From positions 62,001-126,000 of IMG/VR virus record IMGVR_UViG_3300030107_006644: DNA of 64,000 bases. One strand, given 5' to 3'. Shown piece by piece: positions 6,763 to 61,241 of this stretch. Below the pieces are notes generated by a model. That model saw nothing but the letters and a program-made list of their open reading frames with translations, ran no database searches and had not been told where the DNA came from. Positions within the stretch are counted from its first letter, which is position 1; each line of letters begins with the position of its first letter. The position numbers were made by a program, and so were the translations under genes.

Positions 6763-6768
6763 TAAACA

Positions 6769-8817: not shown

Positions 8818-9649
8818 GCACAACAAGAAGAGAAATACTGCATTCCTATATGAGAGCTTGATTGTGGAGCTTACCAAAGCAATCGTAAGTGGCGCTATTG
8901 TCGACAGAGACCGAATATTAGAAACTATTCGGCACTATTTTAAACCAAGTACGATGTTGTGGGAAGATCTACAGTATTACAAGGCGCTCTCTGAGTCGGA
9001 AGGTCTGGATGTTTATACCGCCGAAAAGCTGATCTTTGAGGTGAAAAAAGATCGCAAAGCAATGGACCACAAACAATTGTTCGTTGAGCAGAGTTCTCTG
9101 ATTAACAGAATCAACAGAAATCTTACAAAATCTGTATATTCTAATTTCGTGCCCGGTTATCGTTCGCTAGCTACAATATCGCAAATTTTCGGAACAGATT
9201 TAACGACTAAACAGAGGGTTTTGCTAGAAAAGGAATTGACCAAGCTTTTAACTTCTCCCTATGAGAAGAAGAGTAATCCCGCGAGAGCAATGATCCCGCT
9301 TGACGACCTTTCTTATGGGGTGTTCGTACAGAAATTTAATAGTGAGTACGATGGAAGCTTGCTTAGCGAGCAAAAGGATTTGTTAAATAACTATATAATG
9401 TCTGTTTCCGACAACGGCAGAATGTTGCGTATATATTTAAATGAAGAGCTGTCTAGATTAAAGGGTGTTCTAACTGAGGCCACATCGCAACCTGACATTA
9501 AACAGGACAGAGGCATGACTGAGGCTACAAATTCGGTCATAGCGATTATTGAGTCTTTCAAAAACGAGCAGACAATAAGCGAGCCTATGATAAAAAGGGT
9601 ACTTAAAATACAAGATTTAGTAAGAGAGATTGAATCCGATGGCGATTAA
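8807..9649 (+). CDS. hypothetical head-cluster protein
   Basis: 280-aa helical ORF overlapping the portal stop; starts KLKHNKKRNTAFLYE. Confidence 0.75.
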   Translation: MKLKHNKKRNTAFLYESLIVELTKAIVSGAIVDRDRILETIRHYFKPSTMLWEDLQYYKALSESEGLDVYTAEKLIFEVKKDRKAMDHKQLFVEQSSLINRINRNLTKSVYSNFVPGYRSLATISQIFGTDLTTKQRVLLEKELTKLLTSPYEKKSNPARAMIPLDDLSYGVFVQKFNSEYDGSLLSEQKDLLNNYIMSVSDNGRMLRIYLNEELSRLKGVLTEATSQPDIKQDRGMTEATNSVIAIIESFKNEQTISEPMIKRVLKIQDLVREIESDGD

Positions 9650-10217
9650 TATCACCGTACAAGATGAAGAGGGCCCCGAGTCTTCTCCAGACGCTAATGA
9701 GGGAGCACCTCCAGAAACTCAAGCATCTATTGAGTTGGTTGCGCGCAGCGCAAATGATGGGAGCATTATGATATTCGACCATCCGGACATCGATATTATT
9801 CTCATTCCAGAAAAGATGAAGGTTGTAACATTAGCCAAAGATCTTATGACGGATGATGTATACGAGACTCAAAACCACTTATTTAAACACTTGACTAGAA
9901 ACGGAATAATTGAGTACGACAGCATTAGGGGTGGAAACGTTTATGGCTCTTTCGAAGCTTCTATGCCAGAATCTGTACATGAGGGTACCAACGCAATTCA
10001 ACTAGCCTTGCTGCAGATTAGCAAGTTTATTGATGATGAGCGTCCCTATTTCGAGTCCGAAAGAGCGTATATGGAGAAAGAAGAAGACCGTCTTCTTGAA
10101 CCCGGCCCAGAAGATTCGACAGAACTGGGAGAAGTTCCACACGCCAGTACGAAAGGTTCGATCCGCCCCGGGTGGATTCGCGGCCCGTTTGGCATCTACG
10201 ACATGTATAGGGTGTAA
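9639..10217 (+). CDS. hypothetical protein
   Basis: ORF overlapping the previous stop; start chosen at ATG MAINITV. Confidence 0.65.
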   Translation: MAINITVQDEEGPESSPDANEGAPPETQASIELVARSANDGSIMIFDHPDIDIILIPEKMKVVTLAKDLMTDDVYETQNHLFKHLTRNGIIEYDSIRGGNVYGSFEASMPESVHEGTNAIQLALLQISKFIDDERPYFESERAYMEKEEDRLLEPGPEDSTELGEVPHASTKGSIRPGWIRGPFGIYDMYRV

Positions 10218-10219
10218 TA

Positions 10220-10540
10220 GTGATAGATTTGCTCTATTTTATTCTTACGGCTTATGGCCTAACTCAAATTTTAGTATACGGCAGCATATTCGACAAAGTA
10301 AGGCCGTCAGAAGGCTTGTTCGGAGAGTTGTTCCGATGCCCCATGTGTTTGGGCTTCTGGGTTGGTGCATTTTTGTTTGGAATAAACGGTTTCACAGAAC
10401 TATTTACATTTGAGTATACAATAGCAAATTTCTTTATTTTGGGTTGGTTATCGTCTGCTACTTCATATGTCTTGAATATGATTATTGGCGATTGTGGGCT
10501 AAAAATTGAAACAATTAGGAGTAAAAACAATGAGCACTAA
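10220..10540 (+). CDS. membrane protein, DUF1360-like
   Basis: GELFRCPMCLGFW motif between hydrophobic helices. Confidence 0.65.
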   Translation: MIDLLYFILTAYGLTQILVYGSIFDKVRPSEGLFGELFRCPMCLGFWVGAFLFGINGFTELFTFEYTIANFFILGWLSSATSYVLNMIIGDCGLKIETIRSKNNEH

Positions 10541-10633: not shown

Positions 10634-11254
10634 ATGAGTAAGAAACTATTAAGAGAATATTATGAGTTGTGCGATGGAGGATCCTGCCCAGACTTGCTTA
10701 CAGAGTCTGAAAAGGAGTTTGTTGCTAAAGGTGGCATAATTTTGTCTGGAAAGCTTCAAGAGGCAGAGGCCAGAAATGGCAATGGGCGAGTTTATCCCAA
10801 GAAAATCTTAGAAAGAGAGATGAAGAATTATCAAAAGCTTGTGAAAGAGCGACGAGCTTTGGGAGAATTAGATCATCCTGATGAATCGGTGATCAATTTG
10901 CGCAACTGTTCTCATGTGGTTACAGAAGTCTGGTGGGATAGCGATAATCCAAACGCAGTAATGGGAAAAATAGAATGTCTCAACACACCATCAGGCAAAA
11001 TACTGCAAGAGCTAGCCAGAGCGGGAGTTAAATTGGGAATCTCCTCTAGAGGTCTGGGATCTGTCAAAGAGGACAAAGGAGACACCATAGTGGAAGACGA
11101 CTTTCAACTAATTTGCTTCGACATGGTATCAGAGCCGTCTACCAATGACGCCTTTATGATGACCGAGGCCAAAGATTACAAAAAGTCTAACATTTTTACC
11201 AAGGCTGATCGAATTAATCGAGCCTTAAACAACGTATTGAGAGATGAGGAATGA
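10634..11254 (+). CDS. gp21: prohead core protease (T4 gp21-like)
   Basis: NGNGRVYP, ALGELDHP, SH, TPSGKIL, GISSRGLGS, FDMVSEPS. Confidence 0.96.
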   Translation: MSKKLLREYYELCDGGSCPDLLTESEKEFVAKGGIILSGKLQEAEARNGNGRVYPKKILEREMKNYQKLVKERRALGELDHPDESVINLRNCSHVVTEVWWDSDNPNAVMGKIECLNTPSGKILQELARAGVKLGISSRGLGSVKEDKGDTIVEDDFQLICFDMVSEPSTNDAFMMTEAKDYKKSNIFTKADRINRALNNVLRDEE

Positions 11255-11703
11255 AAAAGCAAGATTTAAGAGAGACGCTTAAGCCACTAATTCGCGAAGC
11301 TGTTCGCGAAATTGTCTTTGAAGAGGGTCTTTTGGCAGGAATAGTAGCAGAGGTGATCACTGGAGTTAATGCGGTCAGCACGCCAACGCCTCAACCTCGC
11401 CACGCCCCGCGAACCGACGCGCCACCTGTGGTGAACGAGATGCAAAGTCGCCAACGACAACAGGCTGCAGCCGCTCGTTCGGCTCGAATGGAACAACAGA
11501 AGCAACAAGTACTTGAGTCAATCAACAGGGATTCTTATAATGGAGTTGACTTGTTTGAGGGAACTACTCCGATTGGCCGAGCGGGCGTCCCGGGCCAAGC
11601 CAGCGCCCAATCGGGCCCACTATCAGGTCAGGCCTCAAACGACCCCGGTGTTGATATATCGGCTTTCTTCGGCACTTCACAAAATTGGAGCAAGTTGGTG
11701 TAA
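11251..11703 (+). CDS. hypothetical head-cluster protein
   Basis: ATGA overlap; LKPLIREAVREIVFEE N-terminus. Confidence 0.7.
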   Translation: MKKQDLRETLKPLIREAVREIVFEEGLLAGIVAEVITGVNAVSTPTPQPRHAPRTDAPPVVNEMQSRQRQQAAAARSARMEQQKQQVLESINRDSYNGVDLFEGTTPIGRAGVPGQASAQSGPLSGQASNDPGVDISAFFGTSQNWSKLV

Positions 11704-15400: not shown

Positions 15401-16359
15401 ATGAGGTTGATGTCTTTTTGGGCAATACCACTACATCTCTTACAACTGTAGCAGGAAGCCTGAAGACTCAAGGAGATGAAGTCACTTTCGAGTCCGCCAA
15501 TTCGCTAGATCCGCTGGTTATTATCAAAAACACCACAAATGACACAAATGGCGCGCGCCTTCAGTTCGTAAAAGACAAAGGCGGCCCCGGCGCCGACAAC
15601 GATATTATTGGATCAATCCTATTCTATGGTGATGACGATGCGCAGCACAATATTGAATTTGCTTCTATTGTTGGTCAAGTGGCTGATGCTTCGAACAATA
15701 ACGAAGGTGGCCGTCTTCTGCTGAGGGTTGCCTCTCACGATGGAGAAGTGAACAACGGCCTAACGATTGAAGACGGGAGTTCCGAAGACGAAGTTAATGT
15801 TACAATTGCCAATGGACCGGGCTCCTCTACAACCATATCAGGTAACGCGATAGTTAACGGCGACCTCGAATTGGCAGAAAGCGTAGGCCAAGGCATGACT
15901 AAGCACTTGTGGCATCAGTCAGTCGATCTCCGCGCCTCTAGTGGTACCGACAACACGATCATCGCCGGCGGAGGCACTGACTTTAAAATTCCACAGTATT
16001 CAAGAATCGTCAGTGTATATGCGGTACCAACGGTAGCCTCAGATCAGACCAACTGTAATGTTGCAATTGTGTTGGATACAAATGGTTCTATTTCGGCGGG
16101 TAGTGGCGTGACCACCGGGATGAATACTGTAGAGGTTATTGGCGCCGGCGCTGCAGATTCAAGGTCTTACGATACGCAAGCCGGCGCATCGGACATTGAT
16201 TGTAAAAATGACGTTAAGAAGCCATGGTATTCTACCACGGCTAATTGGGCTGGAGCAGACATGTATGTTTATGTTGTCAATGCGGGCACTTCGAATGGTG
16301 GAGGATCACCCAGCGCAGGCTCAATTGAGATTTTCATCGAATATTATGGAATGGACTAG
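12406..16359 (+). CDS. long fibre-like structural protein (1317 aa)
   Basis: VGIGTTSP motif, Gly/Asp/Thr-rich beta repeats, internal duplication. Confidence 0.8.
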   Translation: MGGFNKGGFSPSRVVNADLEVDGGTVSVDADNDKVGIGTTSPKTKLTVQGAVTVAEQDSRTAAGVTAGYGQIWVKDDNPCNLYYTDDAGNNVQITSGGSLAGVAGSLSGLGSTDNAIMRTNGTGGETAQGSGIIIDDSNNVSSMGTLGVGAITTSGVLDITDTTDSSNASGDTGALRVEGGASIAKKLYVGTDLDVDGTTNLDAVDIDGNVQLDGTLTIGANDAGYDVIFYGDAASANMTWDTSADDLILNGAARIVVPDGQLVLASTAVSSTAAELNKLDGADSNVTAAKLSTLSALSDAEIGYVDGAGTSVVASKAVVADSNKDVGTIRNLTIDGTFSDGNYTFDTSGNVSGLGTVGCGAITTSGVLDITDTTDSSDDSGDTGALRVEGGASIAKKLYVGTDLDVDGTTNLDAVDIDGNVQLDGTLTIGANDAGYDVIFYGDAASANMTWDTSADDLIFNGAARIVVPDGQLVLASTAVSSTAAELNKLDGADSNVTAAKLSTLSALSDTEIGYVDGAGTSAVASKVLVADANKDVGTIRNLTIDGTFSDGNYTFDTSGNVSGLGTVGCGAVTSTGALKIGSAAGSGVDAYLYTAGTAAHVGIQWDADGETEGILIGGADNHGVDFKFFGESSGKYVHWDMSGDELVLASSAKISFNDAGGGENVVASADGHLEINSGTTLDMTAPTVDINASTAVTVDTPGVTITDTTATSATEGGYVRLAADDGAVMANGHRLGVIEFAGAEDTSSTISVGARIEALCRDAWDGSNNDANLLFYTTDGTTQSEVLKLDADKKATFAGATQFNGTATFGVDDTGVDIRVFSATASEGLLYDASQDELGLLLTTKLSFHDIGGGENIHASEDGTLDLNAGTLLDVTAPTIDLNASTAVTIDGPVVTIADSAAGKPILTLKTTHTTKTSSSELQFLKDAADTEDGEVLGQITFYGEDEGNNNTQFVGIAAEIAESDDGAEGGKLSFRVASHDGELQSGLTILDGDAEDEVDVFLGNTTTSLTTVAGSLKTQGDEVTFESANSLDPLVIIKNTTNDTNGARLQFVKDKGGPGADNDIIGSILFYGDDDAQHNIEFASIVGQVADASNNNEGGRLLLRVASHDGEVNNGLTIEDGSSEDEVNVTIANGPGSSTTISGNAIVNGDLELAESVGQGMTKHLWHQSVDLRASSGTDNTIIAGGGTDFKIPQYSRIVSVYAVPTVASDQTNCNVAIVLDTNGSISAGSGVTTGMNTVEVIGAGAADSRSYDTQAGASDIDCKNDVKKPWYSTTANWAGADMYVYVVNAGTSNGGGSPSAGSIEIFIEYYGMD
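12853..14118 (+). repeat. 633-bp tandem duplication (211 aa x2) inside the fibre gene
   Basis: Units 12853-13485 and 13486-14118 both begin GAITTSGVLDITDTTDSS and end VSGLGTVGC. Confidence 0.9.
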
Positions 16360-24262: not shown

Positions 24263-24326
24263 TTGTGATAAAACAATTTTATATACGACGAAACGTATAT
24301 AGTACAATTTGGATCGGGAGAAAATA

Positions 24327-25574
24327 ATGTCTACAATGCTGGAGCAAGCGATAGTTGATGCGAAAGCGCTGAAAGAAGCCGCAGTTAAGAGTGCTGAACA
24401 AGCGATAATAGAAAAATACGCACCTGAAGTTAAACAAGCTGTTGAGAGTTTGCTTGAGCAAGGTCCGCCACCGGGAATGCCGATGGATCCCATGGGGATG
24501 CCCCCCGGAGATCCGGCTATGATGGGTGGTATGCCAATGGATCCCATGGGGGCGCCTCCTCCTGCCCCCGGCGCGGGAGCCGATCCGGCCGCCGCCATGG
24601 GTTCTCTCGTTCCACCCCCTGTTGCAGGCACGCAAGGAGAAAATCTTTGCCCCTGCCCCGAAGAAGGTAAACCCGTGAATCTTGATTTGACACAGCTGGT
24701 CCATGCAATAAACGGAGAAGCAGCTATGCAAGATGCAGCTATGGGAATGGCGGCCGGCGGAATGCCTCCAATGCCTCCCGGCGGAATGCCTCCAATGCCT
24801 CCCGGAATGGGAATGGCACCTCCCCCAATGCCAGCCGCAGGACAGAGCCCGATGGCTCCCGGTGGCGGAATGGGCTTACCGCCCGGAATGATGGCAGAGG
24901 GTCAAGTCCTCGCTCTAACGCAAGAGGCTTTACAAGAAATCATTGATGAGTCCAACGACCTCGGTATTGACGAGGAAATGTTGAGCAGCATCGCAGAAGA
25001 AGTTATGGCCGGCCTTAAGGAAGAGGCCAACTTCGAAACTAGAGCAAACTTTAGTTCTCCCTCGACAGGTATGGGTGGAAACACCACGCCAGTCGGAGTT
25101 CACCAAGAGGCTGATGATATCGCATGTGCAGAACTCGCCTTGGCTGAGAAAAATGAAGCTCTCCGTCAGGACAATACGAATATCAGAGAATATGCAATTG
25201 CTCTAGAGCAAAAAAATGAACAGATTACCCAAATGTTACAGCATTTAAATGAGAGGTTGTACGTAGTTAACCTTTCGAATGCTAAACTACTATACACGAA
25301 CCGTGTCTTAAGTGATAACTCCTTGAATGAGCGGCAACGCATAAAGATTGTCGAAACCATCTCAAAGTCCGGTTCACCCGAAGAGGCGAAAGCACTTTAC
25401 GAAACTCTTCTAAGCGCAGTGGGGACACAAGTCAAACCTAAAAAGACTCCCAAATCACTTCGTGAAGCAGTCAGTAGAGACCGGTCTCTTCAGATGCCGA
25501 GAAGGCAAAAACCAAGTTCTCCCGATGCGAAAGCTATGGATAGAATGAGGATGCTTGCTGGTATCAAAAAGTGA
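24327..25574 (+). CDS. prohead scaffold/core protein (T4 gp22-like position)
   Basis: Directly upstream of the MCP; coiled coil, VNLSNAKLLYTNRVL, C-terminal DRMRMLAGIK; Pro/Met/Gly-rich insert. Confidence 0.8.
   Translation: MSTMLEQAIVDAKALKEAAVKSAEQAIIEKYAPEVKQAVESLLEQGPPPGMPMDPMGMPPGDPAMMGGMPMDPMGAPPPAPGAGADPAAAMGSLVPPPVAGTQGENLCPCPEEGKPVNLDLTQLVHAINGEAAMQDAAMGMAAGGMPPMPPGGMPPMPPGMGMAPPPMPAAGQSPMAPGGGMGLPPGMMAEGQVLALTQEALQEIIDESNDLGIDEEMLSSIAEEVMAGLKEEANFETRANFSSPSTGMGGNTTPVGVHQEADDIACAELALAEKNEALRQDNTNIREYAIALEQKNEQITQMLQHLNERLYVVNLSNAKLLYTNRVLSDNSLNERQRIKIVETISKSGSPEEAKALYETLLSAVGTQVKPKKTPKSLREAVSRDRSLQMPRRQKPSSPDAKAMDRMRMLAGIKK
24756..24803 (+). repeat. perfect 24-bp tandem repeat x2 (GGMPPMPP)
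   Basis: ggcggaatgcctccaatgcctccc twice. Confidence 0.9.
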
Positions 25575-25605: not shown

Positions 25606-27516
25606 ATGTCTGTATTACAAAAACTAACCGAGGGGATTGTTGACAGAGATCTTGGAAAGGAAGGCGCCGCCCTGCTTAGTAAGTGGGAACGTACCGGTCT
25701 TTTAGAGGGTCTTAACAATGATCATACTCGTTCTAGCATGGCTAGACTGCTTGAAAATCAAGCAAAGGAGCTTCTCCGAGAGGCTTCTACTATGGCCGGC
25801 GGTGACGTTGAAGGCTTCGCATCTGTTGCGTTCCCGATTGTCCGTCGTGTCTTTGGAGGCCTTATCGCCAACGATCTGGTTTCCGTGCAGCCTATGAGCT
25901 TGCCTTCTGGTCTGATCTTCTTCTTAGACTTTCAGGTCACACCCGGTACCGCTCCTAGACTTGGCGCCAGCGATGACGATTCGTTATTCGGCGGTGGCCG
26001 CGTCGGTTCTGCAATCACTGGCGGTGTCAGTCTCGTCGACAATGACATTGAGAAGGGTTTCTACAACCTTAATCAAGGTTATTCGTCTCCGACTGGATCG
26101 CTTCAGCTTACGCTGGTTCCGATTGCTTCCGGTACTGTTGGTAGTGGTATCCTTGATGATGCCGTAGGGGCAGTGTCCCACTCTAGCTGGAAGAACAGCA
26201 AGGCAACCTCGCTTAGCGAGCTTTGCCAGTACGATCCCGATCTTTCTGGATCTTGCGTTGTTGTTGCAACCGCTGCGGGTAATGCCCTTCTGGGCGCAGC
26301 CGGCACTGGTAGTTTGAATCGTGATAACTTAGTTGCGATGATGATTTCATACAATGCATCGGATACCGCCTCCGCAGATGGTCTCTATACGGGTGTCGGA
26401 GGTGCTGCTCGCATGCATCGTCGTCTTACTCGCTTAGTCGGCAGATCTGCAACCACTGCTGAGTACAGCAACCAAGCTTTGGATCCGGGTGATAGCACCA
26501 ACACATCTCTTTTGTTCGTGTTTGAGTCTACGGGTTCGGCAGCCGGCGCAGGAGCTACTGCGGTCAGTCATGAGACAGGCCTCAAGAACCTCTTGACTCG
26601 GGTTGGTTCTGGTGCAAGTGCTACGGTTAGAGCCAAGGCTTTCGACTATCCAATTAGAGATAATCTCAACAATGTTGGAGAAAGAGCACTTGGATCGCTC
26701 GTCGGTGCTGACCAGTGGGGACTGGAAGCCAATGAGGAAATCCCTGAGATCGACATCAAGGTCGATTCCGTGGCGATTACCGCTGTAACCAAGAAGCTCA
26801 AGGCCAAGTGGACGCCTGAGTTGGGACAGGATCTTAATGCCTATCACAACTTGGACGCCGAGGTTGAGTTAACCGGTATTCTTTCCGAGCAGATTGCGCT
26901 GGAGATTGATCGCGAAATCGTGAACGATCTTGTTGTCAACGCATCGGCTGGAACGTACTACTGGTCTCGTTCGCCCGGTATGTTCCTTCGCAGGGACACT
27001 GGTGCTGAGATTGGAGCTAGCTCTGCTGCTCCGGACTTCACCGGTACCGTTAGCGAGTGGTATGAGACTCTTGTCGAAACCATCAACGATGTGTCTGCAC
27101 AGATTCACCGTAAAACTCTCCGTGGTGGAGCAAACTTTATCGTCTGCGGACCTGAAGTTGCTAACATCCTTGAGTTCACCAGTGGATTCCGTGCCAACAT
27201 CACTCATGATGATGACAAGGGAACTGTCGGCGCTGTGAACGCTGGCTCTATCTCGAAGAAGTGGGATGTCTGGGTTGACCCATACTTCCCCCGCAACGTG
27301 ATCCTTGTGGGTCGCCGTGGTAACAGCTTCCTTGAGAGCGGCTATGTTTACGCTCCGTATGTACCACTGCAGACTACCCCCACAATCTTCGGAACGGAAG
27401 ACTTCGTGCCACGTAAGGGTGTTATGACCCGCTACGGCAAGAAGATGGTCCGTCCTGATATGTATGGGCTAGTTATTGTTCGCGGTCTACTTGGTGAGGC
27501 TGGCGCTACAAGCTAA
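25606..27516 (+). CDS. gp23: major capsid protein (T4 gp23-like)
   Basis: LVSVQPMSLPSGLIFFLDF, KLKAKWTPELGQDLNAYHNLDAEVELT, YAPYVPL, GVMTRYG. Confidence 0.98.
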   Translation: MSVLQKLTEGIVDRDLGKEGAALLSKWERTGLLEGLNNDHTRSSMARLLENQAKELLREASTMAGGDVEGFASVAFPIVRRVFGGLIANDLVSVQPMSLPSGLIFFLDFQVTPGTAPRLGASDDDSLFGGGRVGSAITGGVSLVDNDIEKGFYNLNQGYSSPTGSLQLTLVPIASGTVGSGILDDAVGAVSHSSWKNSKATSLSELCQYDPDLSGSCVVVATAAGNALLGAAGTGSLNRDNLVAMMISYNASDTASADGLYTGVGGAARMHRRLTRLVGRSATTAEYSNQALDPGDSTNTSLLFVFESTGSAAGAGATAVSHETGLKNLLTRVGSGASATVRAKAFDYPIRDNLNNVGERALGSLVGADQWGLEANEEIPEIDIKVDSVAITAVTKKLKAKWTPELGQDLNAYHNLDAEVELTGILSEQIALEIDREIVNDLVVNASAGTYYWSRSPGMFLRRDTGAEIGASSAAPDFTGTVSEWYETLVETINDVSAQIHRKTLRGGANFIVCGPEVANILEFTSGFRANITHDDDKGTVGAVNAGSISKKWDVWVDPYFPRNVILVGRRGNSFLESGYVYAPYVPLQTTPTIFGTEDFVPRKGVMTRYGKKMVRPDMYGLVIVRGLLGEAGATS

Positions 27517-52988: not shown

Positions 52989-53008
52989 AAATAACTATTT
53001 ATTATGCT

Positions 53009-55645
53009 ATGCCGATTTATCATGATAAGTGGCGCCAATTTCTGAAAGAAGAGGAAGAGTTTCAGAAGAACGTAGTGCGCCCCCGACTTAAACGAAACCG
53101 CTCTGCCCTCATAGACTCTGGACCCCATAATCACAATGGAGGTGGCGAATCCGGCGCCAAACCTAAGCCTCGCGGAGACTTGCCGCACGATGCTGGTCCA
53201 CTAAAAGAAGGGTTACAGCCTCAGCCTCGTTTGTTGCGCGAGATATCCGAAGACGAGGTGGAGCATATCCGCACAGCCATTGATGAAATGGGTCCAGAAG
53301 AACTCGCCTTCAATGATGCATTCGAAGGTAAGACGCGCAAGGTTATTGATTTTGCAGCCATTGACGTGGACTCTGAGCTTGGAAAGTTCATGGAGTTCTT
53401 TAGAAAGCAGGAGTACGAAGTAGATTGGAAGCGCGGGCTCGTCACAGCACTGCGAGATGTAACAACTTCGGAAGACTTAATAGATCAGCTTTTCGGACCC
53501 GGCCAGCCACCCAAAAAGAAGTACAAGAAAATTCAGATGAAGATCGGCAAGCTGTTTCCGAAGATAGCAGAAGTAGGAAAGAATCAGGCCGTACTCTTTA
53601 AGAAGGTCGTGGAACATGCCAAAATCCATCACGCGAATCGCATACCAAACCATCCGGGTAATGTCAGCGACCACCAATTGAAACAAGCACTGCCAGACGA
53701 AGAAGAATACAAGAGATACCAACAATTGTATCAACAAATGAGATTGTATGTGCCGAACTCCGGCTATTTTCAGCCGTCATGGTGGGAGGTTCCAGATTGG
53801 GCAACTAAGATGTCTAAGTATTGGCAAGAGAATGCAGCATACATTAAAGATGAGATCGATGAACTAAAAGGAGACCAGTACTCCATTATCCTCACGCGAG
53901 ATCCGATTGACATCCTTCGCATGAGCGATTTTAATAACATCACCTCCTGCCACACTCCGCCATCCAGAGGCGGGGGCGACACCTACTATAAGTGCGCAGT
54001 TGCTGAAGCTCACGGCCACGGAGCTATTGCATATGTTGTTGAAACACAAGAGCTATTAGAGGCTACTGAGACCGACACAATTGAGGCTGCTGAAGCTGTC
54101 ATCGAGCAGCTTGGAGGAGAGATCTTTCCAGACGATGTTAGGGGAAGCCATGTCGGACTCAGCACGGAGTTGAATCCAGTCTCTAGGCTACGTCTCAGAA
54201 AGTTTGTGTATGACACTCCAGATCCAGAGGGTGGTTACGATATCGGCACACAGCTAGCGGTACCGGAGAAGCGTGTGTACGGAAAGAAGATTCCCGGCTT
54301 CGTTGAGCGTGTAGTTCAGTGGGCGAGAGATAATCAGGAAGAGGCTCTTCAGAACATGCCAGTGGATGCATACGGTGATGGCATCGATTTAGGCAAGTTT
54401 AATATTGTGGGTGCTTCCTATGAAGATACTCAAGGCTATTCCGGCCGCCGGGCTCTTATGGTGCAACTAACTGGCCGGCCAAACGAAGACTTTGATGGCC
54501 AGATCGAGCAAGATGCAAGCGCGGAACATGACTTAGACACCTCTATGTTTACCGCTGGCCAAATTGAAGATGCCCAACTCCGCGCCGATGAGATAGCTGA
54601 AGACTGGAACCGTCGCTACCAAGCTGCGGAAATTCAGGCAACTGCTGAAGACGACGATGGCCAAGTCATCATCATGCTCAGAGCATATATGAAGGTTGAC
54701 TGGGGCGAAGAAGAGTGGAACAAGCTTCCGCTTCCAAGCACTGCGCGCTGGGCAGTCTCGGAGCTTAACGACTTGGGTTGGTCTTGGGCCGATGAAGGCA
54801 CGGCTTGGCTTAGGCGGGACACGCACAGACAAACAATATCTTTGGGCTTCCGTATCAACCCCGAGCATATACCAGAGTGGACCGGCATGCCGTTCACTGC
54901 AGACCCAGAAGAGATCGAAGACTTTGGCGTAGCCGTCAACGCTATTGATGACATGTACGACGGAATTAAACATTACCTCACCAGACACTACAAACTCCAA
55001 GGCATTATGGCCGGCGGTGCATTTTTAAACATGGCCATGGAGATCTCAAACAATGATATTGATCCATATGAGTGGACGCTTGAACTTGATGACCGGTGGG
55101 ATCCGGAGGAAGCTAACATTGCAATAGGTCAAGTAGAGTTCTTCTTTGATGCCGAGGAGCTTCAGTGGAACCCACAAGTTCTACAGCAGGTGCTAGACTC
55201 CCACGATTTTAGAACTGCGATTCGGAACAAAATGTTGGCAGATGCCAAAGAAGAGGTCGGAACACAGTACAACGTAGACATTTGGACGCAGGGGACGGGG
55301 GCTTTGATAGTTGATAATGGCGTAAACTACGAATTTGCACTTGTTGTTAGCAATGAGGATCCGGATGAAGTGATCGAATTGTTTCAGACAGCAGTCTGGC
55401 AACCCGGTACTGTCGATGACGAAGATAAGCTTCGCGAAATCTTTTTGGGAACACTGGAAACGATGCAGAGAGCGCGGATGCCATCTGGTATGAGAGATCC
55501 AGAGCCTATCGAACAATCTGGTCCCGACCAGCCAGATCCGCCGCCGGCCCAAAATTCTGAAGATGAGAATCTACCAAGCAGTAGATTAGATGAGAGTAGA
55601 AATATGCATAGGATGTACAAGAAATGGAGAAGCTTTATAAAATGA
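53009..55645 (+). CDS. large acidic hypothetical protein with leader-like motifs at both ends
   Basis: Late motif at 52994; N-terminal DKWRQFLKE, C-terminal KKWRSFIK; central DILRMSDF..ITSCH. Confidence 0.75.
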   Translation: MPIYHDKWRQFLKEEEEFQKNVVRPRLKRNRSALIDSGPHNHNGGGESGAKPKPRGDLPHDAGPLKEGLQPQPRLLREISEDEVEHIRTAIDEMGPEELAFNDAFEGKTRKVIDFAAIDVDSELGKFMEFFRKQEYEVDWKRGLVTALRDVTTSEDLIDQLFGPGQPPKKKYKKIQMKIGKLFPKIAEVGKNQAVLFKKVVEHAKIHHANRIPNHPGNVSDHQLKQALPDEEEYKRYQQLYQQMRLYVPNSGYFQPSWWEVPDWATKMSKYWQENAAYIKDEIDELKGDQYSIILTRDPIDILRMSDFNNITSCHTPPSRGGGDTYYKCAVAEAHGHGAIAYVVETQELLEATETDTIEAAEAVIEQLGGEIFPDDVRGSHVGLSTELNPVSRLRLRKFVYDTPDPEGGYDIGTQLAVPEKRVYGKKIPGFVERVVQWARDNQEEALQNMPVDAYGDGIDLGKFNIVGASYEDTQGYSGRRALMVQLTGRPNEDFDGQIEQDASAEHDLDTSMFTAGQIEDAQLRADEIAEDWNRRYQAAEIQATAEDDDGQVIIMLRAYMKVDWGEEEWNKLPLPSTARWAVSELNDLGWSWADEGTAWLRRDTHRQTISLGFRINPEHIPEWTGMPFTADPEEIEDFGVAVNAIDDMYDGIKHYLTRHYKLQGIMAGGAFLNMAMEISNNDIDPYEWTLELDDRWDPEEANIAIGQVEFFFDAEELQWNPQVLQQVLDSHDFRTAIRNKMLADAKEEVGTQYNVDIWTQGTGALIVDNGVNYEFALVVSNEDPDEVIELFQTAVWQPGTVDDEDKLREIFLGTLETMQRARMPSGMRDPEPIEQSGPDQPDPPPAQNSEDENLPSSRLDESRNMHRMYKKWRSFIK

Positions 55646-55824
55646 ACTATAAGTTGTGGCTAATTGTTTTGCTTTTGCTATTGGCGTGCGCACCAAAGAA
55701 AGAGGTGCGCGTACCTGAGCAGACACCGGTTGAGTTTATTCGATACGAAGAGATAGACTTTCCGGACGACGAAGAGTTGGAAGACTTGCCTGAAGCCGGC
55801 GAGGAAACAGAGGACGAAGAATAA
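55642..55824 (+). CDS. small lipoprotein with acidic tail
   Basis: ATGA overlap; lipobox LLAC after a hydrophobic stretch. Confidence 0.65.
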   Translation: MNYKLWLIVLLLLLACAPKKEVRVPEQTPVEFIRYEEIDFPDDEELEDLPEAGEETEDEE

Positions 55825-55825
55825 G

Positions 55826-56266
55826 ATGGAACTTATATCGACACACATATGCAAAGGCCAGAACATTGGCGTGCATGGAAATCTTTTTGGAGGCGTTATG
55901 CTATCGTGGCTGGATGAGGCCGGCGCAGCATACGCATGTCAGGTTTGCGATACCCCGCGAATGGTGACTGTGAAGATGGCAGAGACTGTATTTAATAGAC
56001 CAGTGCGGCCGGGACAATTAATCAAAGTGTATGGCGAGGTGTTGGAGATAGGCAACTCCTCATGCAAAGTTAAACTTCAGGCTAGAAGACACAGCGTGTA
56101 CAACGGCACGCAGAAGCCGGTATGCCAGACTGAATTAACTTACGTCAGAATCGATGGCGATGGTGAGGCGATACCGATCAGCAAAAAGGTTAAAGACGCT
56201 TATCGCCGAAAACTTGAGGAAGAGGAAGACGATTCAGAACTGTATGAGATTCACGGAGGAGATTAG
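55826..56266 (+). CDS. hotdog-fold acyl-CoA thioesterase (YciA-like)
   Basis: HGNLFGGVMLSWLDEAG, MVTV, F.RPV..G, GNSS, YVRID. Confidence 0.9.
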   Translation: MELISTHICKGQNIGVHGNLFGGVMLSWLDEAGAAYACQVCDTPRMVTVKMAETVFNRPVRPGQLIKVYGEVLEIGNSSCKVKLQARRHSVYNGTQKPVCQTELTYVRIDGDGEAIPISKKVKDAYRRKLEEEEDDSELYEIHGGD

Positions 56267-56353
56267 AAAATCTGAGATCCAAAACGGATCGAAAATGTCG
56301 AAATTCCAAAATTTCGTCGCAAGCAATTTTTCCAGATTTTCACTTTTAGTTAT

Positions 56354-56776
56354 ATGAAGCTTTTGTTAGAAAAATGGCGCAGATTCTTATTTGAAGAAAG
56401 AGAGGAAGATATGGACAGCAAGAAAATAGCGAAAATTGTCTTATATGACGGAAACAAGGTTCTATTATTAAGGAGATCGAGACATTTAAAGAAGTATCCC
56501 GGAGAATGGGATCTGCCCGGCGGCCACTTAATTGTTGGAGAAGAAGTTACAGACGGCCTCCAGAGAGAGGTTTGGGAAGAGACTGGCTTAACGATTAGAA
56601 GCCCAGAAAAGGTGTATTCCCAGAGTAGATACACCTATTTTAAGGCGCCTATGCCAACTGGTGGAATTAAACTTAGTCAGGAACACACCGAGCACGAAAT
56701 GGTAGATATGGCAAACTTGTCTAATTATGAACTACCGGAAAAATACCGAACTGCAGTGGAGAGGGCTATGAAGTGA
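56354..56776 (+). CDS. Nudix hydrolase with shared leader
   Basis: WDLPGGHLIVGEEVTDGLQREVWEETGL Nudix box; LSQEH. Confidence 0.93.
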   Translation: MKLLLEKWRRFLFEEREEDMDSKKIAKIVLYDGNKVLLLRRSRHLKKYPGEWDLPGGHLIVGEEVTDGLQREVWEETGLTIRSPEKVYSQSRYTYFKAPMPTGGIKLSQEHTEHEMVDMANLSNYELPEKYRTAVERAMK

Positions 56777-56991
56777 GAAATTTGATTAGAAAATCGCAAC
56801 AGCATATTGGCTCGCGAAATGAAACTTACTTTCAACATATGAAAGCGGCATGGAAGATTATTTACCTGCTAAAGACCCTAGAGCTAAAATGTTTCATACA
56901 TTCCTTTATTCCGGGACTATTTACAGATGCAGTATCTGAAAAGATTGAGTGTTTGCAAAAAATGGCAAGCAGAAACAAGGAGCAGCAATGA
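56773..56991 (+). CDS. DUF6356-like small protein
   Basis: ETYFQHM...IHSFIPGLF. Confidence 0.6.
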   Translation: MRNLIRKSQQHIGSRNETYFQHMKAAWKIIYLLKTLELKCFIHSFIPGLFTDAVSEKIECLQKMASRNKEQQ

Positions 56992-58346
56992 AATTAATAC
57001 TTGAAAAATGGCGAAAATACGAAGAAGAGCAGAGATTAGATGAGGTTGCCGAAATGGGCGATGAGTATGGTAGCCGATCAGATTCAGAACCCGGCCCTAG
57101 GGTCAGCGACGCCCTCCGCCGCTTCACGAGCCCGGAGTCAGCCGGAGGCCAACTCGGCAACATCGCCGGTGGCAAAGCGGCAAGCCGAAGTGTTCCGTCA
57201 CAGGTTGCAGGATTCGCCGGCGATATTCTCAATACCTATCAACAGTCTGGAGAGCACGACACTGCAGGCCACGATCCTGCCGGATCCGCCCGAACAGCCA
57301 TCGAATCTGGCGTGATCGAGCGAATTCCAAAACTTGGTCATGTCGGGTTAGCCACAGATATAGGGAATACCATACAACACCTGACTCAAGGCCGAGGAGC
57401 AGAAGCTGGCCGCACCGCCATGGCCGGCGCAGGTGATGCTCTCGGAGGTATTCTCGGCACAGCGCTCCTTGGCCCGGGCGTCGGCACTGCCATTGGAGCT
57501 ACAGCCGGCGACTGGGCTGGTCGGAGCTTAGGTCCGGGATCGGTGGCACACCGCAGATGGTCAGACCCGGGGCGTCTGATGAGTGATTTTGGCTACGAGG
57601 TCGGCGCTTTGGCCCCCGGAGGGGAAACGGCGATGCAACGATATGGCGACCGTGGCGTCGGCCAGACTTTGGATGATTTTGGCTACGAGGTCGGCGATGT
57701 TGTAGACCGCCGCGTTATCCAGCCGGCTGCTGAAGCAGCTGAATCGTTCCGGTCTGGAGAGATGTTCGGCCCACGAGGAACAGCAATTGCAAATTCGCCA
57801 TGGAACCCTCTTAGTCGAAATTTTGCTTTGTACGAGGGAGAAAGTATGGCAACACATCAAAAAACAGATCTACTAACAGAAGCGCAAGTTTTAAGAATGC
57901 GGCAATTATCGGGAATCAGTTCGAAAAGGAGGGTTGTTTTGAACGAAGAGGTAGCCACTGGCATGTGGGCCGTTGGTCTAATTGTTTATTTTCTCGTCCT
58001 CGGTGAAATGACTGACCGATGGCAAGTCGGAAAGCCGGAGGGGGGCCCACTTAGTGCTCTCGGTCGAGGCGTAAAGTCTGCATGGCAGAAGCTCAAGTCT
58101 TCCGCCGAATCCAAAGCTCAGCAAGGAGACGAAAGTCTTGAATCTGTTGTTGATGCTGTCGAATCTGAAGGAGCCCGCGCCGCTCAGTCCGCAAATTTGT
58201 CGGAAGAAGACATCGCCAGAATTCAATCAGAATTTGGAGATGACGAGCAGTTGGCAGCACTTCTCTCGCAACTTGAGGAAGCTCCACCAGAAGCATATGA
58301 GCAGGTTCTTATGCAAATTGAACAATACGTTAAATCAAAGCTATAG
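56988..58346 (+). CDS. leader-bearing hypothetical protein with glycine zipper and TM helix
   Basis: AAGGAG RBS; MKLILEKWRKY; GGILGTALLGPGVGTAIGATAG; MWAVGLIVYFLVLG. Confidence 0.75.
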   Translation: MKLILEKWRKYEEEQRLDEVAEMGDEYGSRSDSEPGPRVSDALRRFTSPESAGGQLGNIAGGKAASRSVPSQVAGFAGDILNTYQQSGEHDTAGHDPAGSARTAIESGVIERIPKLGHVGLATDIGNTIQHLTQGRGAEAGRTAMAGAGDALGGILGTALLGPGVGTAIGATAGDWAGRSLGPGSVAHRRWSDPGRLMSDFGYEVGALAPGGETAMQRYGDRGVGQTLDDFGYEVGDVVDRRVIQPAAEAAESFRSGEMFGPRGTAIANSPWNPLSRNFALYEGESMATHQKTDLLTEAQVLRMRQLSGISSKRRVVLNEEVATGMWAVGLIVYFLVLGEMTDRWQVGKPEGGPLSALGRGVKSAWQKLKSSAESKAQQGDESLESVVDAVESEGARAAQSANLSEEDIARIQSEFGDDEQLAALLSQLEEAPPEAYEQVLMQIEQYVKSKL

Positions 58347-58359
58347 TGGTAGGTAGGCA

Positions 58360-58998
58360 ATGAAACTCTTAATGGAAAATTGGCGAAGGTTTATAAACGA
58401 GGGCGCGGATCCGGAAGTCGTCCGCGATGCGTTCGCAAACACGCCTCCCGACTATATGGAGGCGTCCGTAAAGCAGAGAAACCCGGGCCCCGGATCTGCA
58501 GGTAGTACATTTTCGTCGCCAACTTCGGTACAAGAACTGGTTTCTGCTAACTGGGTACCTTACAATCATCCAGATATACAGAGCCCGGCAGTTGGGTTTA
58601 AAGCGCCGATATCTGGTGAGTTAGGAATTGCAGAAATAAGCGGACTACCAGACGATCAGGTTGTCAGATTTCAGCCCGCACACGGAGGCAAGGTGACCGT
58701 TAAAGACGAGAGCAGTCCTAAATTTGGCCAACAATTGGCAGAAGTGGCCACGGACATACCTGCTGGCAATAGAAATGTCAGTCATACAACTCTTATTTTA
58801 GGCCCATCACAAGAAGACCCAAACAAATTAAGGGTTTGGACCTTTTTCCCGGGCGATCCCACTCCAAAATTTCCAGACATTACGATGGACGATGTTCGAC
58901 GCGCTCTTGGCTCAAAAGAAGAGGAGGTCGTCGCCACTGTTGCTGATGCTAAGCAAATGGGTTACACTTTTGTCAAGCATGCCGAGGGTATTGCGTGA
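58360..58998 (+). CDS. leader-bearing hypothetical protein
   Basis: MKLLMENWRRFINE; C-terminal LILGP...VWTFFPGDP. Confidence 0.75.
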   Translation: MKLLMENWRRFINEGADPEVVRDAFANTPPDYMEASVKQRNPGPGSAGSTFSSPTSVQELVSANWVPYNHPDIQSPAVGFKAPISGELGIAEISGLPDDQVVRFQPAHGGKVTVKDESSPKFGQQLAEVATDIPAGNRNVSHTTLILGPSQEDPNKLRVWTFFPGDPTPKFPDITMDDVRRALGSKEEEVVATVADAKQMGYTFVKHAEGIA

Positions 58999-59456
58999 AG
59001 CTCCTACTTGAAAATTGGCGGAAGTATTTGAAAGAGGTTTCTATGGGCCGCGATATGACAAGCTCTATAGAATACACAGCCTTAGTGCTCGACAACGATT
59101 CGCATGAGAGGCTAGCCGTATACGCTCCAGAAGGGTGGAAAGTTATTGCCCACCATATGACAATCATCAGGCCTCACGAAATGAAAAGTGGTCGGCTACC
59201 AAGCCAATGGCTGGACTTTGAGGGATGCTTTGAAGTAACGCATATCGCTCAAAATGAGCAAGTCATGACTGCTCTGGTTGATCTTGGAGATACACCAATA
59301 CCGATGAAAGGGCCAGTCATGCCGCATGTCACTATTGCCACCAACCCGGAAACAGGTGGGAAGGCGTACATGTCCAACGATATTCCAATTACAAGCTTTG
59401 AAGAATTGTCGGAACCAATCAGCATATGCGGCGCCGTCGAGGAGGTGTTTAGATGA
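58995..59456 (+). CDS. 2H phosphoesterase-family protein with shared leader
   Basis: Two HxT motifs, HHMTI and PHVTI. Confidence 0.75.
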   Translation: MKLLLENWRKYLKEVSMGRDMTSSIEYTALVLDNDSHERLAVYAPEGWKVIAHHMTIIRPHEMKSGRLPSQWLDFEGCFEVTHIAQNEQVMTALVDLGDTPIPMKGPVMPHVTIATNPETGGKAYMSNDIPITSFEELSEPISICGAVEEVFR

Positions 59457-60427
59457 AGCTCCTATTTGAAAATTGGCGAAGGTTTATAACTGAAGAAACA
59501 GATGCAACAGGCGCTATGCCTGCACATCTTGACACAAAGAAGATCGAGGCTGCGAACCAAGAGCTTTTAGGCCAACAGGGTTATACTATCTTGCGTGAGC
59601 TTGGTAGAGGACACTACGGGGTTGTGTACGAGGTTCAGAATGAACAGAGCGGTGAGCGACTCGCAGCGAAAGTTGTCAGAAAGAGTGATAGAGAAACAGA
59701 GAATTACGAATTTGCGATGAAAAACAAGGGCTCAATGCCTCCTGAATATGCAAAATACTTGCCAGAGGTTAAAGAAATTATACCCGGAGCCTCAGACCGC
59801 AACATCATATTCATGGAGCTACTTAAACCTTTGCCAGACAGAGTGGCGCAGGAACTGTTTGCAATGGAAGATAAACCCGATGCATCGCAAAAAACAGAAA
59901 AGATCTTAAAAAGCCCCGAAGCGGTGGCTGAGTTAGTTCAAAGAATTGTCAACAATAATAGAATTTTAAACCAAATGCGCGACTTCTTAGTTAATCGGAA
60001 AGAGGTTACAAAAGCTGCCGTTAACGCAGCGACTAAATCTTCGCACTCGGATCCTGAAGGCCTCCTGAAGGCTGTGTATGGTGCCGTAGTCCGAGAACTT
60101 GAATTTCAAAGTGTTGGAGTTTACAAGTCTTTCGAGTCTGCTTTGAAGAATGATCTGCTGTTTTACTTAGATAAACAGGTTGTACCTGTTCACCAGCCAG
60201 AGCCAGACGATCCAGATGCGGATGATTTGTGGACAGGCCCGGCCATGGCAAAGACACAAGAGTTGTTCCCCGAGGCCGAGAACCTAATTAATGCTATGAG
60301 GTATTTTATGCAAGACCAGCAGTGGCGGCCTAAAGATGTGCACATAAAGAACGTTATGATGAGGCCATCGACTAATGATTTTGTAATTGTAGATCTGGGC
60401 TTGTTCCAGAGAGGGATATTTGAATGA
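59453..60427 (+). CDS. Ser/Thr protein kinase-like protein with shared leader
   Basis: LGRGHYGVVY, AAK, IFMELL, DVHIKNVM, IVDLG. Confidence 0.85.
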   Translation: MKLLFENWRRFITEETDATGAMPAHLDTKKIEAANQELLGQQGYTILRELGRGHYGVVYEVQNEQSGERLAAKVVRKSDRETENYEFAMKNKGSMPPEYAKYLPEVKEIIPGASDRNIIFMELLKPLPDRVAQELFAMEDKPDASQKTEKILKSPEAVAELVQRIVNNNRILNQMRDFLVNRKEVTKAAVNAATKSSHSDPEGLLKAVYGAVVRELEFQSVGVYKSFESALKNDLLFYLDKQVVPVHQPEPDDPDADDLWTGPAMAKTQELFPEAENLINAMRYFMQDQQWRPKDVHIKNVMMRPSTNDFVIVDLGLFQRGIFE

Positions 60428-61203
60428 AAGATTTATTAGATGCTTGGTCGAAATACGCCGATAGGCCCATGTTTGAAGAGATTATGCCTTCCGACGTCGA
60501 CACCGCCAGTTTTAGAATAAACGATGAACTTGAACACAGGGTATGGGATAAGGACGATAAATTGAAGCCAGAAATCCGCCAACGTCTTTTGGAAATAGCC
60601 TCGGAAGCTTGGGCCATTATGGGTCTTCCTACCGTAGCTGTTGACGACATAACTTTTACGGGCTCCTTGGCCAACTATAATTGGTCGTCATATTCTGATG
60701 TTGACTTGCATATACTGGTTGATTTTGGAAGCTTGCCGGGCCCCGAAGATTTGGCAGAAGTAATGATGAACGCAAAACGCGCCGCATGGAACAACAAGCA
60801 CGATATCACAATACACGGCTACGAGGTAGAGATATACATTCAGGATTCCAACGAAGTGCACCATTCTACCGGCGTATATTCGGTGCTGCATGATAGCTGG
60901 CTTGTCAAGCCCGAGAAAAAAAGGTTTACGATTGACTACGACAATGTTAAGCTTAAGGCTGCTCACATAATGAATCAAATTGATAAGATTGAAAATGTAT
61001 ATGAGCGCGGCGGCTATGAAGAGGCGATGCAAGATGTTGACAGGCTGAAAGAAAAGATCAGAAAGTTTAGAAAGTGTGGACTTGAACAAGGTGGCGAATA
61101 CTCATCGGAAAATATCGCATTTAAAGCACTTAGGAGAAATGGCTATCTGAAAAAGCTTTCGGATTTAAAGACAACCTCCTATGACAACTTAAGATCTATT
61201 TAG
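60424..61203 (+). CDS. Pol beta-superfamily nucleotidyltransferase
   Basis: TGSLANYNWSSYSDVDLH (GS..DxD), EVEIY, GEYSSENIAFKALRRNG. Confidence 0.85.
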   Translation: MKDLLDAWSKYADRPMFEEIMPSDVDTASFRINDELEHRVWDKDDKLKPEIRQRLLEIASEAWAIMGLPTVAVDDITFTGSLANYNWSSYSDVDLHILVDFGSLPGPEDLAEVMMNAKRAAWNNKHDITIHGYEVEIYIQDSNEVHHSTGVYSVLHDSWLVKPEKKRFTIDYDNVKLKAAHIMNQIDKIENVYERGGYEEAMQDVDRLKEKIRKFRKCGLEQGGEYSSENIAFKALRRNGYLKKLSDLKTTSYDNLRSI

Positions 61204-61212
61204 AAAATTCGC

Positions 61213-61241
61213 TTGACATTCTGGCCCGAATTGGCTATATT
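61213..61241 (+). promoter_or_regulatory. sigma70-like promoter for helicase
   Basis: TTGACA-17-TATATT. Confidence 0.75.

Follow-up and report, generated by a model that had tools for sequence, protein, structure and literature searches.

A leader peptide resembling the T4 capsid-targeting sequence on otherwise unrelated proteins of an uncultured marine T4-like jumbo phage

Introduction

Proteins that enter a cell together with phage DNA act before host defence or phage transcription, and they are known for few cultured phages. The internal proteins of phage T4 are diverse defence and take-over proteins that share only a short N-terminal capsid-targeting sequence (CTS), and the loci encoding them vary among relatives (PMC3012670, PMC9026906). 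Mutational work on that sequence has traced targeting mainly to residues 4 and 7, and processing to residues 8 and 10 (PMC9026906). The gp21-type protease cuts after glutamate in short motifs of the [LIV]-x-E type, and T4 Alt, with its sites ITE-6 and LTE-619, loses propeptides at both ends (PMC5694885). The subject here is a 64,000-nucleotide stretch of DNA, bases 62001–126000 of the 205,517-bp virus record IMGVR_UViG_3300030107_006644 (this whole stretch is ‘the window’ below, and coordinates refer to it unless stated otherwise), and within it a run of genes, 53009–61203, nearly all of which open with the same leader peptide. Among them are genes for a Nudix hydrolase, a 2H phosphoesterase, a kinase and a nucleotidyltransferase (NTase). 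We consider it probable, with real room for error, that the leader-tagged proteins are CTS-tagged internal proteins, i.e., that they are packaged in the head, trimmed after a glutamate and ejected into the host.

How close is the likeness to what has been described? With T4 IPI, IPII, IPIII and Alt there is in common a short N-terminal peptide on unrelated proteins with the same aromatic-x-x-F-[IL]-x-E spacing, a gp21-type protease, a gp23-type capsid and cargo loci that are variable among relatives; Alt, moreover, acts enzymatically on host proteins, which it modifies once injected (PMC9026906, PMC5694885). Phages phiKZ and SPN3US, which are not close relatives, also deliver to the host many head-internal proteins that have been cut after glutamate in a short motif, but there the propeptides are mostly >100 residues long, no single short tag is shared and the protease is of the S80 type (PMC5694885). 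The leader differs from the T4 CTS in having 14–18 residues with an extra MKLL-x-E head, and in place of T4’s few small basic proteins there are mostly mid-sized enzymes as cargo, numbering about 12 per genome and drawn from >120 families in the clade, known from genes alone. In encapsulins, too, a short peptide, at either terminus, sends diverse enzymes into a shell of the HK97 fold, though encapsulins are not viruses, have no protease step and do not eject their cargo.

A leader shared by unrelated proteins

The four enzymes with which the analysis began are encoded as follows.

56354–56776, + strand: leader and Nudix hydrolase (Pfam NUDIX, E 3.1e-15, 56.8 bits against a 21.1-bit cut-off)
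58995–59456, + strand: leader (codons 1–14) and 2H phosphoesterase of the CNPase/tRNA-ligase cyclic phosphodiesterase (CPD) type, 153 amino acids (aa), GTG start (HxT motifs, AlphaFold2 (AF2) model, structural matches)
59453–60427, + strand: leader and kinase of the eukaryotic protein kinase type, 324 aa (invariant catalytic residues, PDB profile, PHROG, Atlas)
60424–61203, + strand: degenerate 18-residue leader, Pol-beta-type NTase and C-terminal helical bundle, 259 aa (motifs, phrog_36119, AF2 model)

The last three open reading frames (ORFs) overlap by 4 nt at each junction, which indicates translational coupling. An initial annotation of this DNA had described them as three coupled genes for a 2H phosphoesterase, a kinase and a Pol beta-type NTase with a Nudix hydrolase nearby, and that description is confirmed by motifs, folds, the overlaps and the Pfam NUDIX match. 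Absent from it was the leader that all four proteins share with each other and with their neighbours.

The consensus of the leader is approximately MKLL-x-E-N-W-R-K-[FY]-[LIV]-x-E, with a length of 14–18 residues, and about 12 otherwise unrelated proteins of the 205.5-kb genome carry it. Two of these are encoded just upstream of the window (at 8257 and 10194 of locus L001), and a second cluster, at 145.7–153.7 kb of the genome, includes a 1742-aa Peptidase_M23 protein, a 680-aa DUF2272 protein and a HAD-like protein. In a regular-expression scan of the whole genome in six frames, the leader was found only right behind the start codons of real ORFs, bar one spurious match, and a scan with a hidden Markov model (HMM) of the leader added three weaker copies. 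Nine copies of this genome went into the HMM, which makes the scores that it gives them circular; evidence free of that problem comes from the regular-expression scan, the relatives and the set of matches from IMG/VR.

Is it the peptide or its DNA that is under constraint? The copies differ in their codons and the DNA upstream of them is not conserved, though some share about 24 nt of near-identical DNA. Across kinase homologues down to 26% identity, W8 and E14 of the leader are as invariant as the catalytic residues. In the AF2 models of the 2H protein and the NTase the leader is a low-confidence helix detached from the catalytic domain, and NTase homologues of other phage groups begin to align only at residue 16–36. 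Because codons and upstream DNA vary, the helix is detached and those homologues align later, the peptide rather than the DNA is what is constrained, and it is an add-on to the enzymes.

Correspondence with the T4 capsid-targeting sequence

When the N-termini of T4 ipIII and ipII (NC_000866) are aligned with the leader, T4 residues 4, 7, 8 and 10 correspond to leader W8, F/Y11, L/I/V12 and E14. Among the IMG/VR matches listed, W is present in 100%, F/Y in 98%, L/I/V/M at W+4 in 95% and E at W+6 in 85%, and the latter two positions were not imposed by the search pattern. Three of the features that characterize a CTS of the T4 type can be read from sequence, namely a shared N-terminal peptide, the T4 determinants together with a [LIV]-x-E end, and a gp21-type protease accompanied by a gp23-type capsid, and all three are found here. 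The protease is as follows.

10634–11254, + strand: prohead serine protease of the T4 gp21 type (Peptidase_S77), which presumably processes the leader (Pfam E 3.5e-30, above cut-off)

A protease of this type is found in 5 of 5 complete relatives. The N-terminus of the protease itself resembles the leader and is kept in each of the six phages, in agreement with the published suggestion that the termini of gp21 target it to the core (PMC9026906).

One gene product of the run resembles T4 Alt in another respect.

53009–55645, + strand: 878-aa protein with a variant N-terminal leader, and with the motif repeated at the very C-terminus (both kept in the orthologues in L007 and L008)

Motifs at both ends of this protein and its orthologues parallel the two-ended processing of T4 Alt. 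The C-terminal copy, W-x-x-[FY]-[LI], is at 55604–55645, and the orthologues are at L007:2049–4667 and L008:3938–6409. A C-terminal copy of the motif is likewise carried by the NTase homologues P0156, P0167, P0176 and P0258.

Promoter-like motifs and inferred timing

Five further features bear on when the leader genes may be expressed.

52994–53001, + strand: ACTATTTA promoter-like motif, 15 nt ahead of gene 53009 (also present at the orthologous position in L007)
56916–56923, + strand: ACTATTTA promoter-like motif ahead of the operon 56988–61203 (motif enrichment)
56988–58346, + strand: leader and 452-aa protein with a Gly-zipper and hydrophobic segments, the first gene behind the promoter-like motif (weak tape-measure-like PHROG match in the Gly-rich part)
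58360–58998, + strand: leader and 212-aa cargo, same operon (shared leader)
61213–61241, + strand: sigma-70-type promoter (11/12 consensus matches) ahead of the gene for the DnaB-like helicase, marking the downstream end of the leader operon

The window has 11 copies of ACTATTTA, all on the + (coding) strand, against 2.1 expected, and a count of 11 was reached in 0 of 100 shuffles. Nine of them are in the structural module, where several stand just upstream of structural genes (scaffold candidate, adaptor and fibre-like genes among them), and the other two precede leader genes (53009 and 56988). A further copy is ahead of the gene for the 1742-aa M23 protein, and relatives retain the motif ahead of their leader genes. 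Replication genes are preceded by sigma-70-type promoters and not by ACTATTTA. As the one motif stands before both structural and leader genes and the replication genes have the other, the arrangement suggests that the leader operons are co-expressed with the structural genes. The T4 late promoter TATAAATA was also considered and shows no enrichment, with 5 copies where 2 are expected and most of them on the minus strand; these matches correspond to a portion of the ACTATTTA-type motif read on the opposite strand. Outside the window, intergenic tandem runs of TTGACA boxes precede short genes at 169.1–172.0 kb and 160–164 kb of the genome, and look like strong early promoters of the sigma-70 type, a contrast to the ACTATTTA class.

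The initial annotation had offered, as one of several ideas, that the enzymes modify host proteins at injection. Injection timing now has real backing in a leader like the T4 CTS, a protease of the gp21 type and a promoter motif of the late type, with packaging being what we infer from them. We take the 2H, kinase and NTase genes to be the final three of an operon, ~56916–61203, that on balance encodes head-packaged internal proteins. Both the cell-wall hydrolase domains and the Gly-zipper protein among the cargo suit ejection proteins. For the 212-aa protein there was no Pfam or PHROG match, and in Atlas its matches were viral hypothetical clusters only.

Relatives, and a changing cargo

The window encodes a large terminase, a portal and a gp23-like major capsid protein as well as a UvsX-like recombinase, a DnaB-like helicase and a ribonucleotide reductase. 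Candidates for the core or scaffold are encoded at 8807–10540, 11251–11703 and 24309–25574. The nearest kin of the capsid protein are those of distant T4-like phages (Flavobacterium phage immuto, Microcystis phage Mel-JY01, Rhodothermus phage RM378, T4-like cyanophages and huge metagenomic phages). Homologues of the studied genes come from Tara, JGI and ENA marine metagenomes. With that capsid kinship, those marine relatives, and the kinase and the 878-aa protein being absent from the cultured-phage collection, the source is an uncultured marine T4-like jumbo phage. The gp23-like match of the major capsid protein itself (25606–27516, 636 aa) is mainly to residues 304–613 plus a short N-terminal stretch, and this partial coverage points to a large insertion or an extra domain.

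Relatives were retrieved through the kinase or the NTase and not through the leader, and most of the neighbouring genes there proved to be leader-tagged. The set of cargo genes in the syntenic slot changes from one relative to another. In the closest relative, L007, synteny is kept from the recombinase (UvsX-like here, RecA_N in L007) to DnaB, and the slot is taken up by genes for a leader-X-Nudix fusion of 471 aa, a SET-domain protein that has the leader, a protein of 659 aa and the NTase, with neither a 2H protein nor a kinase among them. The 204-kb relative L004 has a thioesterase, a 768-aa protein, Nudix, proteins of 370, 201 and 211 aa, the kinase, a 169-aa protein and a HAD protein. Relatives L008 and L009 have other sets again, an RNase_T-like protein among them. 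The fusion in L007 is at 5996–7411 and the SET-domain protein, of 132 aa, at 7408–7806; it looks as though cargo domains have been strung together after one leader. In L008 a leaderless gene with a Pfam Acb5 match (15588–15902) lies about 5 kb from the kinase gene.

How widespread is the leader? IMG/VR was scanned with a degenerate DNA pattern for it, giving at least 119 loci, many of them on contigs of 170–205 kb and often with 3–4 copies within a few kb. These comprise at least 261 unique leader ORFs in at least 122 unrelated sequence clusters. Most of the clusters among the matches listed have no Pfam match; the recognisable cargo families among those matches include NUDIX, AAA_33, Pkinase, a CCA-type PolyA_pol with an RNA-binding domain, Zeta_toxin, HD, RNase_T, an Rv2179c-like exoribonuclease, NT5C, HAD/DUF2608, tRNA_lig_CPD, NTP_transf_2 and DUF192. 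As slot cargo differs among relatives and the leader cargo in IMG/VR is this diverse, the trio of 2H protein, kinase and NTase is one local sample of a large shuffled pool of tagged cargo and not a conserved module. The suggestion of a dedicated three-gene kit finds no support in the comparison, given the L007 slot that lacks two of the three and the other sets in other relatives. A more general caution is that adjoining cargo genes need not form one pathway.

Other lineages have shared tags of their own, ending in [LIV]-x-E, on the orthologous 2H protein or NTase and on neighbouring proteins. On the 141-kb contig L134, an LLREYI-type tag is on the orthologous 2H protein and seven neighbours, and in Maribacter phage Molly a different tag is on the NTase homologue and its neighbours. 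In Molly_1 (L003, 8649–19347), a cultured flavobacterial phage, the gene for the NTase homologue adjoins a Nudix gene and the tag common to several neighbours ends in L-[VI]-E; this phage is a possible culturable test system. A second type of tag, ITKRQL..II.E, occurs in the present genome on several small acidic or Pro/Gly-rich proteins encoded a short way upstream of the window (L001:5243–7879, i.e., 55.2–57.9 kb of the genome), and the N-terminus of a 150-aa protein encoded after the protease gene (11251–11703) is similar to it. The same tag is on the products of six consecutive genes of the unrelated contig L134 (16514–20286), and a ACTATTTA-type motif precedes some of the genes that have it.

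Can one then go further, and read any ORF that starts with the leader as encoding a head-packaged, ejected protein across a widespread clade of marine T4-like phages of 170–205 kb, with >120 effector families readable from metagenomes and other lineages using tags of their own? We put this forward tentatively, and would not be surprised to see it fail in part. If it is true, the effector families would include kinases, Nudix, 2H and CCA-type enzymes, NTases, a SET methyltransferase, phosphatases, exonucleases and cell-wall hydrolases. Should the leader prove to be a signal for capsid targeting, sequence alone would suffice to list the proteins injected by an abundant group of uncultured marine phages. 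That proteome would be dominated by enzymes that modify nucleotides, RNA ends and proteins, and early strategies of counter-defence and take-over would become testable. There would also be a natural 14-residue tag for loading foreign proteins into capsids of this kind, a use to which the T4 CTS has already been put.

The three coupled enzymes

In the 2H protein, H54-x-T56 and H111-x-T113 are invariant among 34 aligned homologues, and with the pseudo-twofold alpha+beta fold of the model the protein has both marks of its superfamily, for which the motifs are two H-x-T/S. The AF2 model has a mean predicted local distance difference test (pLDDT) score of 87, with the leader set apart as a low-confidence helix of residues 2–22, and its structural matches are exclusively to 2H enzymes. 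The top one is the catalytic domain of mouse CNPase (Z 12.9, root-mean-square deviation (rmsd) 2.7, 133 residues aligned), against Z 7.3 over 111 residues for Acb1 (7t27) and Z 5–7 for LigT-type proteins, CPDases and Usb1. Foldseek also gave CNPase among the best matches, together with the fungal tRNA-ligase kinase-CPD structure Trl1 (6u05) and LigT. By sequence, Pfam tRNA_lig_CPD (PF08302) matches the protein weakly, at 15.1 bits against a 23-bit cut-off; many of its relatives have a precomputed match to PF08302, which for one clade representative reaches E 2.3e-6. A search of the PDB with the family’s sequence profile gave no meaningful match, and none to Acb1.

The protein thus has the two HxT motifs of CNPase and of the CPD domain of fungal and plant tRNA ligases, and matches CNPase over nearly the whole domain, but its own domain is much smaller (~130 residues), stands alone behind the leader and is below the Pfam cut-off. 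With Acb1, an anti-CBASS 2H phosphodiesterase of T4-like phages, it shares the 2H fold, small size and phage origin, yet it is clearly less similar to it than to CNPase and has no sequence match to it, and so the earlier analogy with Acb1 is weakened. Acb1-like cleavage of cyclic oligonucleotides is possible, though Acb1 is a less similar model than CNPase. Distant relatives are fused to an AAA_33-like domain, though at E 0.02–0.03 this domain assignment is a weak one, and in contig L134 the 2H gene comes directly after a gene for a CCA-type NTase. With CNPase and tRNA-ligase CPD nearest, those fusions, and that adjoining gene, the likeliest activity of the enzyme would be the healing of RNA ends with 2′,3′-cyclic phosphate. 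Searches of the phage’s own genome for RNA_ligase, RtcB and AAA_33 found none. Therefore any RNA repair by this phage would be ligase-free repair of 3′ ends or would depend on host enzymes; of the repair function proposed at the outset, a ligase-based kit can be discarded, and 3′-end healing without a ligase is possible.

The kinase has its Gly-loop (G51, G53, G56), K73, E81, D295, N300 and D314-x-G316 invariant in 29 homologues, i.e., the Gly-loop, VAIK Lys, alpha-C Glu, catalytic Asp and Asn and DFG Asp of the Pkinase family are all in place. In a search of the PDB with the profile of its family, AKT and PKA aligned in both the N-lobe and the segment with catalytic loop and DFG. The Pfam Pkinase match (28.0 bits, under the 31.7-bit cut-off) is to the N-lobe only. 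The layout is odd. Between hinge and catalytic loop there is an insert of ~170 residues, most of them unconserved, and the C-terminus is reached ~8 residues past DLG, the DFG equivalent (D314-x-G316), so that a canonical C-lobe and activation segment are lacking; the insert may supply the usual C-lobe helices. PHROG kinase families, the T7 type included, are matched by the kinase (phrog_15752 weakly), and its Atlas neighbour cluster bears Phage_T7_kinase, so that there appears to be a weak resemblance to phage protein kinases of the T7 gp0.7 type. Small size, phage origin and the eukaryotic protein kinase type are common to it and T7 gp0.7; it differs in the stretch of ~170 residues from hinge to catalytic loop and in having almost nothing beyond the DFG-equivalent motif. 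T7 gp0.7, for its part, is not a packaged protein: it is synthesised early, from DNA already injected. Two of the kinase homologues, P0135 and P0138, are kinase-Nudix fusions.

For the NTase, G80-S81, D92-x-D94 and E136 are invariant in 26 homologues, and with the NTase core fold these supply the hG[GS], DxD and third carboxylate of the Pol-beta superfamily. Its AF2 model (pLDDT 88) has a core similar to those of minimal NTases (2rff, Z 7.2; 1ylq, Z 6.8) and it also resembles FAM46; a wide structural search with the model gave mostly helical-bundle matches to the C-terminal domain. The best row from Foldseek is CdnE, one of the CD-NTases (CBASS cyclases), but with a template modelling (TM) score of only 0.23 and an rmsd of 16, and ANT, FAM46 and CCA enzymes fare alike, the rows having TM scores of about 0.25. 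Pfam matches are all below threshold, and the best sequence match in the PDB is the adenylyltransferase DrrA/SidM (E 0.006). The protein belongs to an unnamed phage family with >4400 matches (phrog_36119, E 1.8e-50), whose members come from Lak phages, huge phages, cyanophages, Caulobacter phage Cr30 and Maribacter phage Molly.

Proposed route into the host, and competing explanations

On the CTS interpretation, the amphipathic N-terminal leader would dock a protein onto the scaffolding core during prohead assembly, as the T4 CTS does, and the gp21-type prohead protease would remove it by cleavage behind the Glu of [LIV]-x-E. The enzyme, now mature, would stay in the head with the DNA, be ejected into the next host cell and act there ahead of any phage gene expression. 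RNA ends with 2′,3′-cyclic phosphate, or else cyclic nucleotides, may then be substrates of the 2H enzyme (CNPase/CPD-like), and host proteins those of the T7-gp0.7-like kinase; the NTase may act on some RNA, protein or small-molecule acceptor, and the Nudix enzyme may have a nucleoside-diphosphate-X compound as its target.

Several points weigh against this. Late timing, packaging, cleavage, ejection and all substrates are conclusions drawn for a phage known from genes alone, and the assignment of ACTATTTA as a late promoter is suggested by its position only. In the cultured-phage collection, searches at both DNA and protein level gave no match to the kinase, the 878-aa protein, the short leaders or the locus as a whole. 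The T4 CTS is shorter than the leader by four residues, a similarity over seven residues can arise by convergence, and the leader of this phage’s own NTase is degenerate. A head of the T4 type would have to hold a great deal of protein, at least 12 enzymes of which one has 1742 aa. A complex prediction for the protease with the kinase leader (residues 1–40) gave no answer, neither for nor against binding.

Could the leader instead work inside the infected cell, with no packaging, as a docking or localisation peptide for a hub protein or multi-enzyme complex, or as an amphipathic helix for membrane targeting? It is predicted to be just such a short amphipathic helix detached from the catalytic domain, the C-terminal copies of the motif fit a generic linear binding motif, and those cargos that deal with nucleotides and RNA ends (Nudix, AAA_33, CCA-type PolyA_pol, HD, RNase_T, NT5C, 2H) could form an assembly. 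We nevertheless think it unlikely, though deserving of serious attention, as it leaves unexplained the position-for-position match to the T4 CTS and the conserved protease-type site [LIV]-x-E, the leader-like N-terminus of the prohead protease, the sharing of ACTATTTA with structural genes and the presence of cell-wall hydrolases in the cargo. Closer to what had first been proposed is that 2H protein, kinase and NTase, with Nudix, make up one pathway, either RNA repair against anticodon nucleases or destruction of second messengers with an Acb1-like 2H enzyme. Translational coupling of the three genes, a fold common to Acb1 and the RNA-healing CPDases, the weakly AAA_33-like fusions and the L134 gene order, and the existence of kinase-Nudix fusions are all in keeping with that. 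The trio is not conserved, however, and syntenic relatives have other cargo; no RNA ligase, RtcB or P-loop polynucleotide kinase was detected in the genome; the kinase is of the protein-kinase and not the polynucleotide-kinase type; and Acb1 is a much poorer structural match than CNPase, which together make a single pathway improbable.

The variation of cargo at the same locus among relatives, and the ~24 nt of near-identical DNA in some leader copies, would also be expected if the shared 5′ ends were DNA-level recombination handles for the swapping of cassettes, with a peptide that has no function of its own. But conservation of the protein exceeds that of the DNA, with synonymous differences between copies, W and E persist without exception in kinases at 26% identity, and different lineages hold different leaders whose terminal [LIV]-x-E is alike; we regard the handle explanation as very improbable indeed. 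Literature searches, on the letters of the leader and on CTS-like tags in marine phages, found no description of it, which is weak evidence of novelty.

Further observations

Within the leader cluster there is also a leaderless ORF (55663–55824) for a small acidic lipoprotein-like product with a signal peptide and a lipobox Cys, which is kept in the closest relative (L007:7864–8028). Outside the window, at 195888–199744 of the genome, ARAGORN identified a tmRNA and four tRNAs (Arg-TCT, Leu-TAA, Lys-TTT and Gly-GCC).

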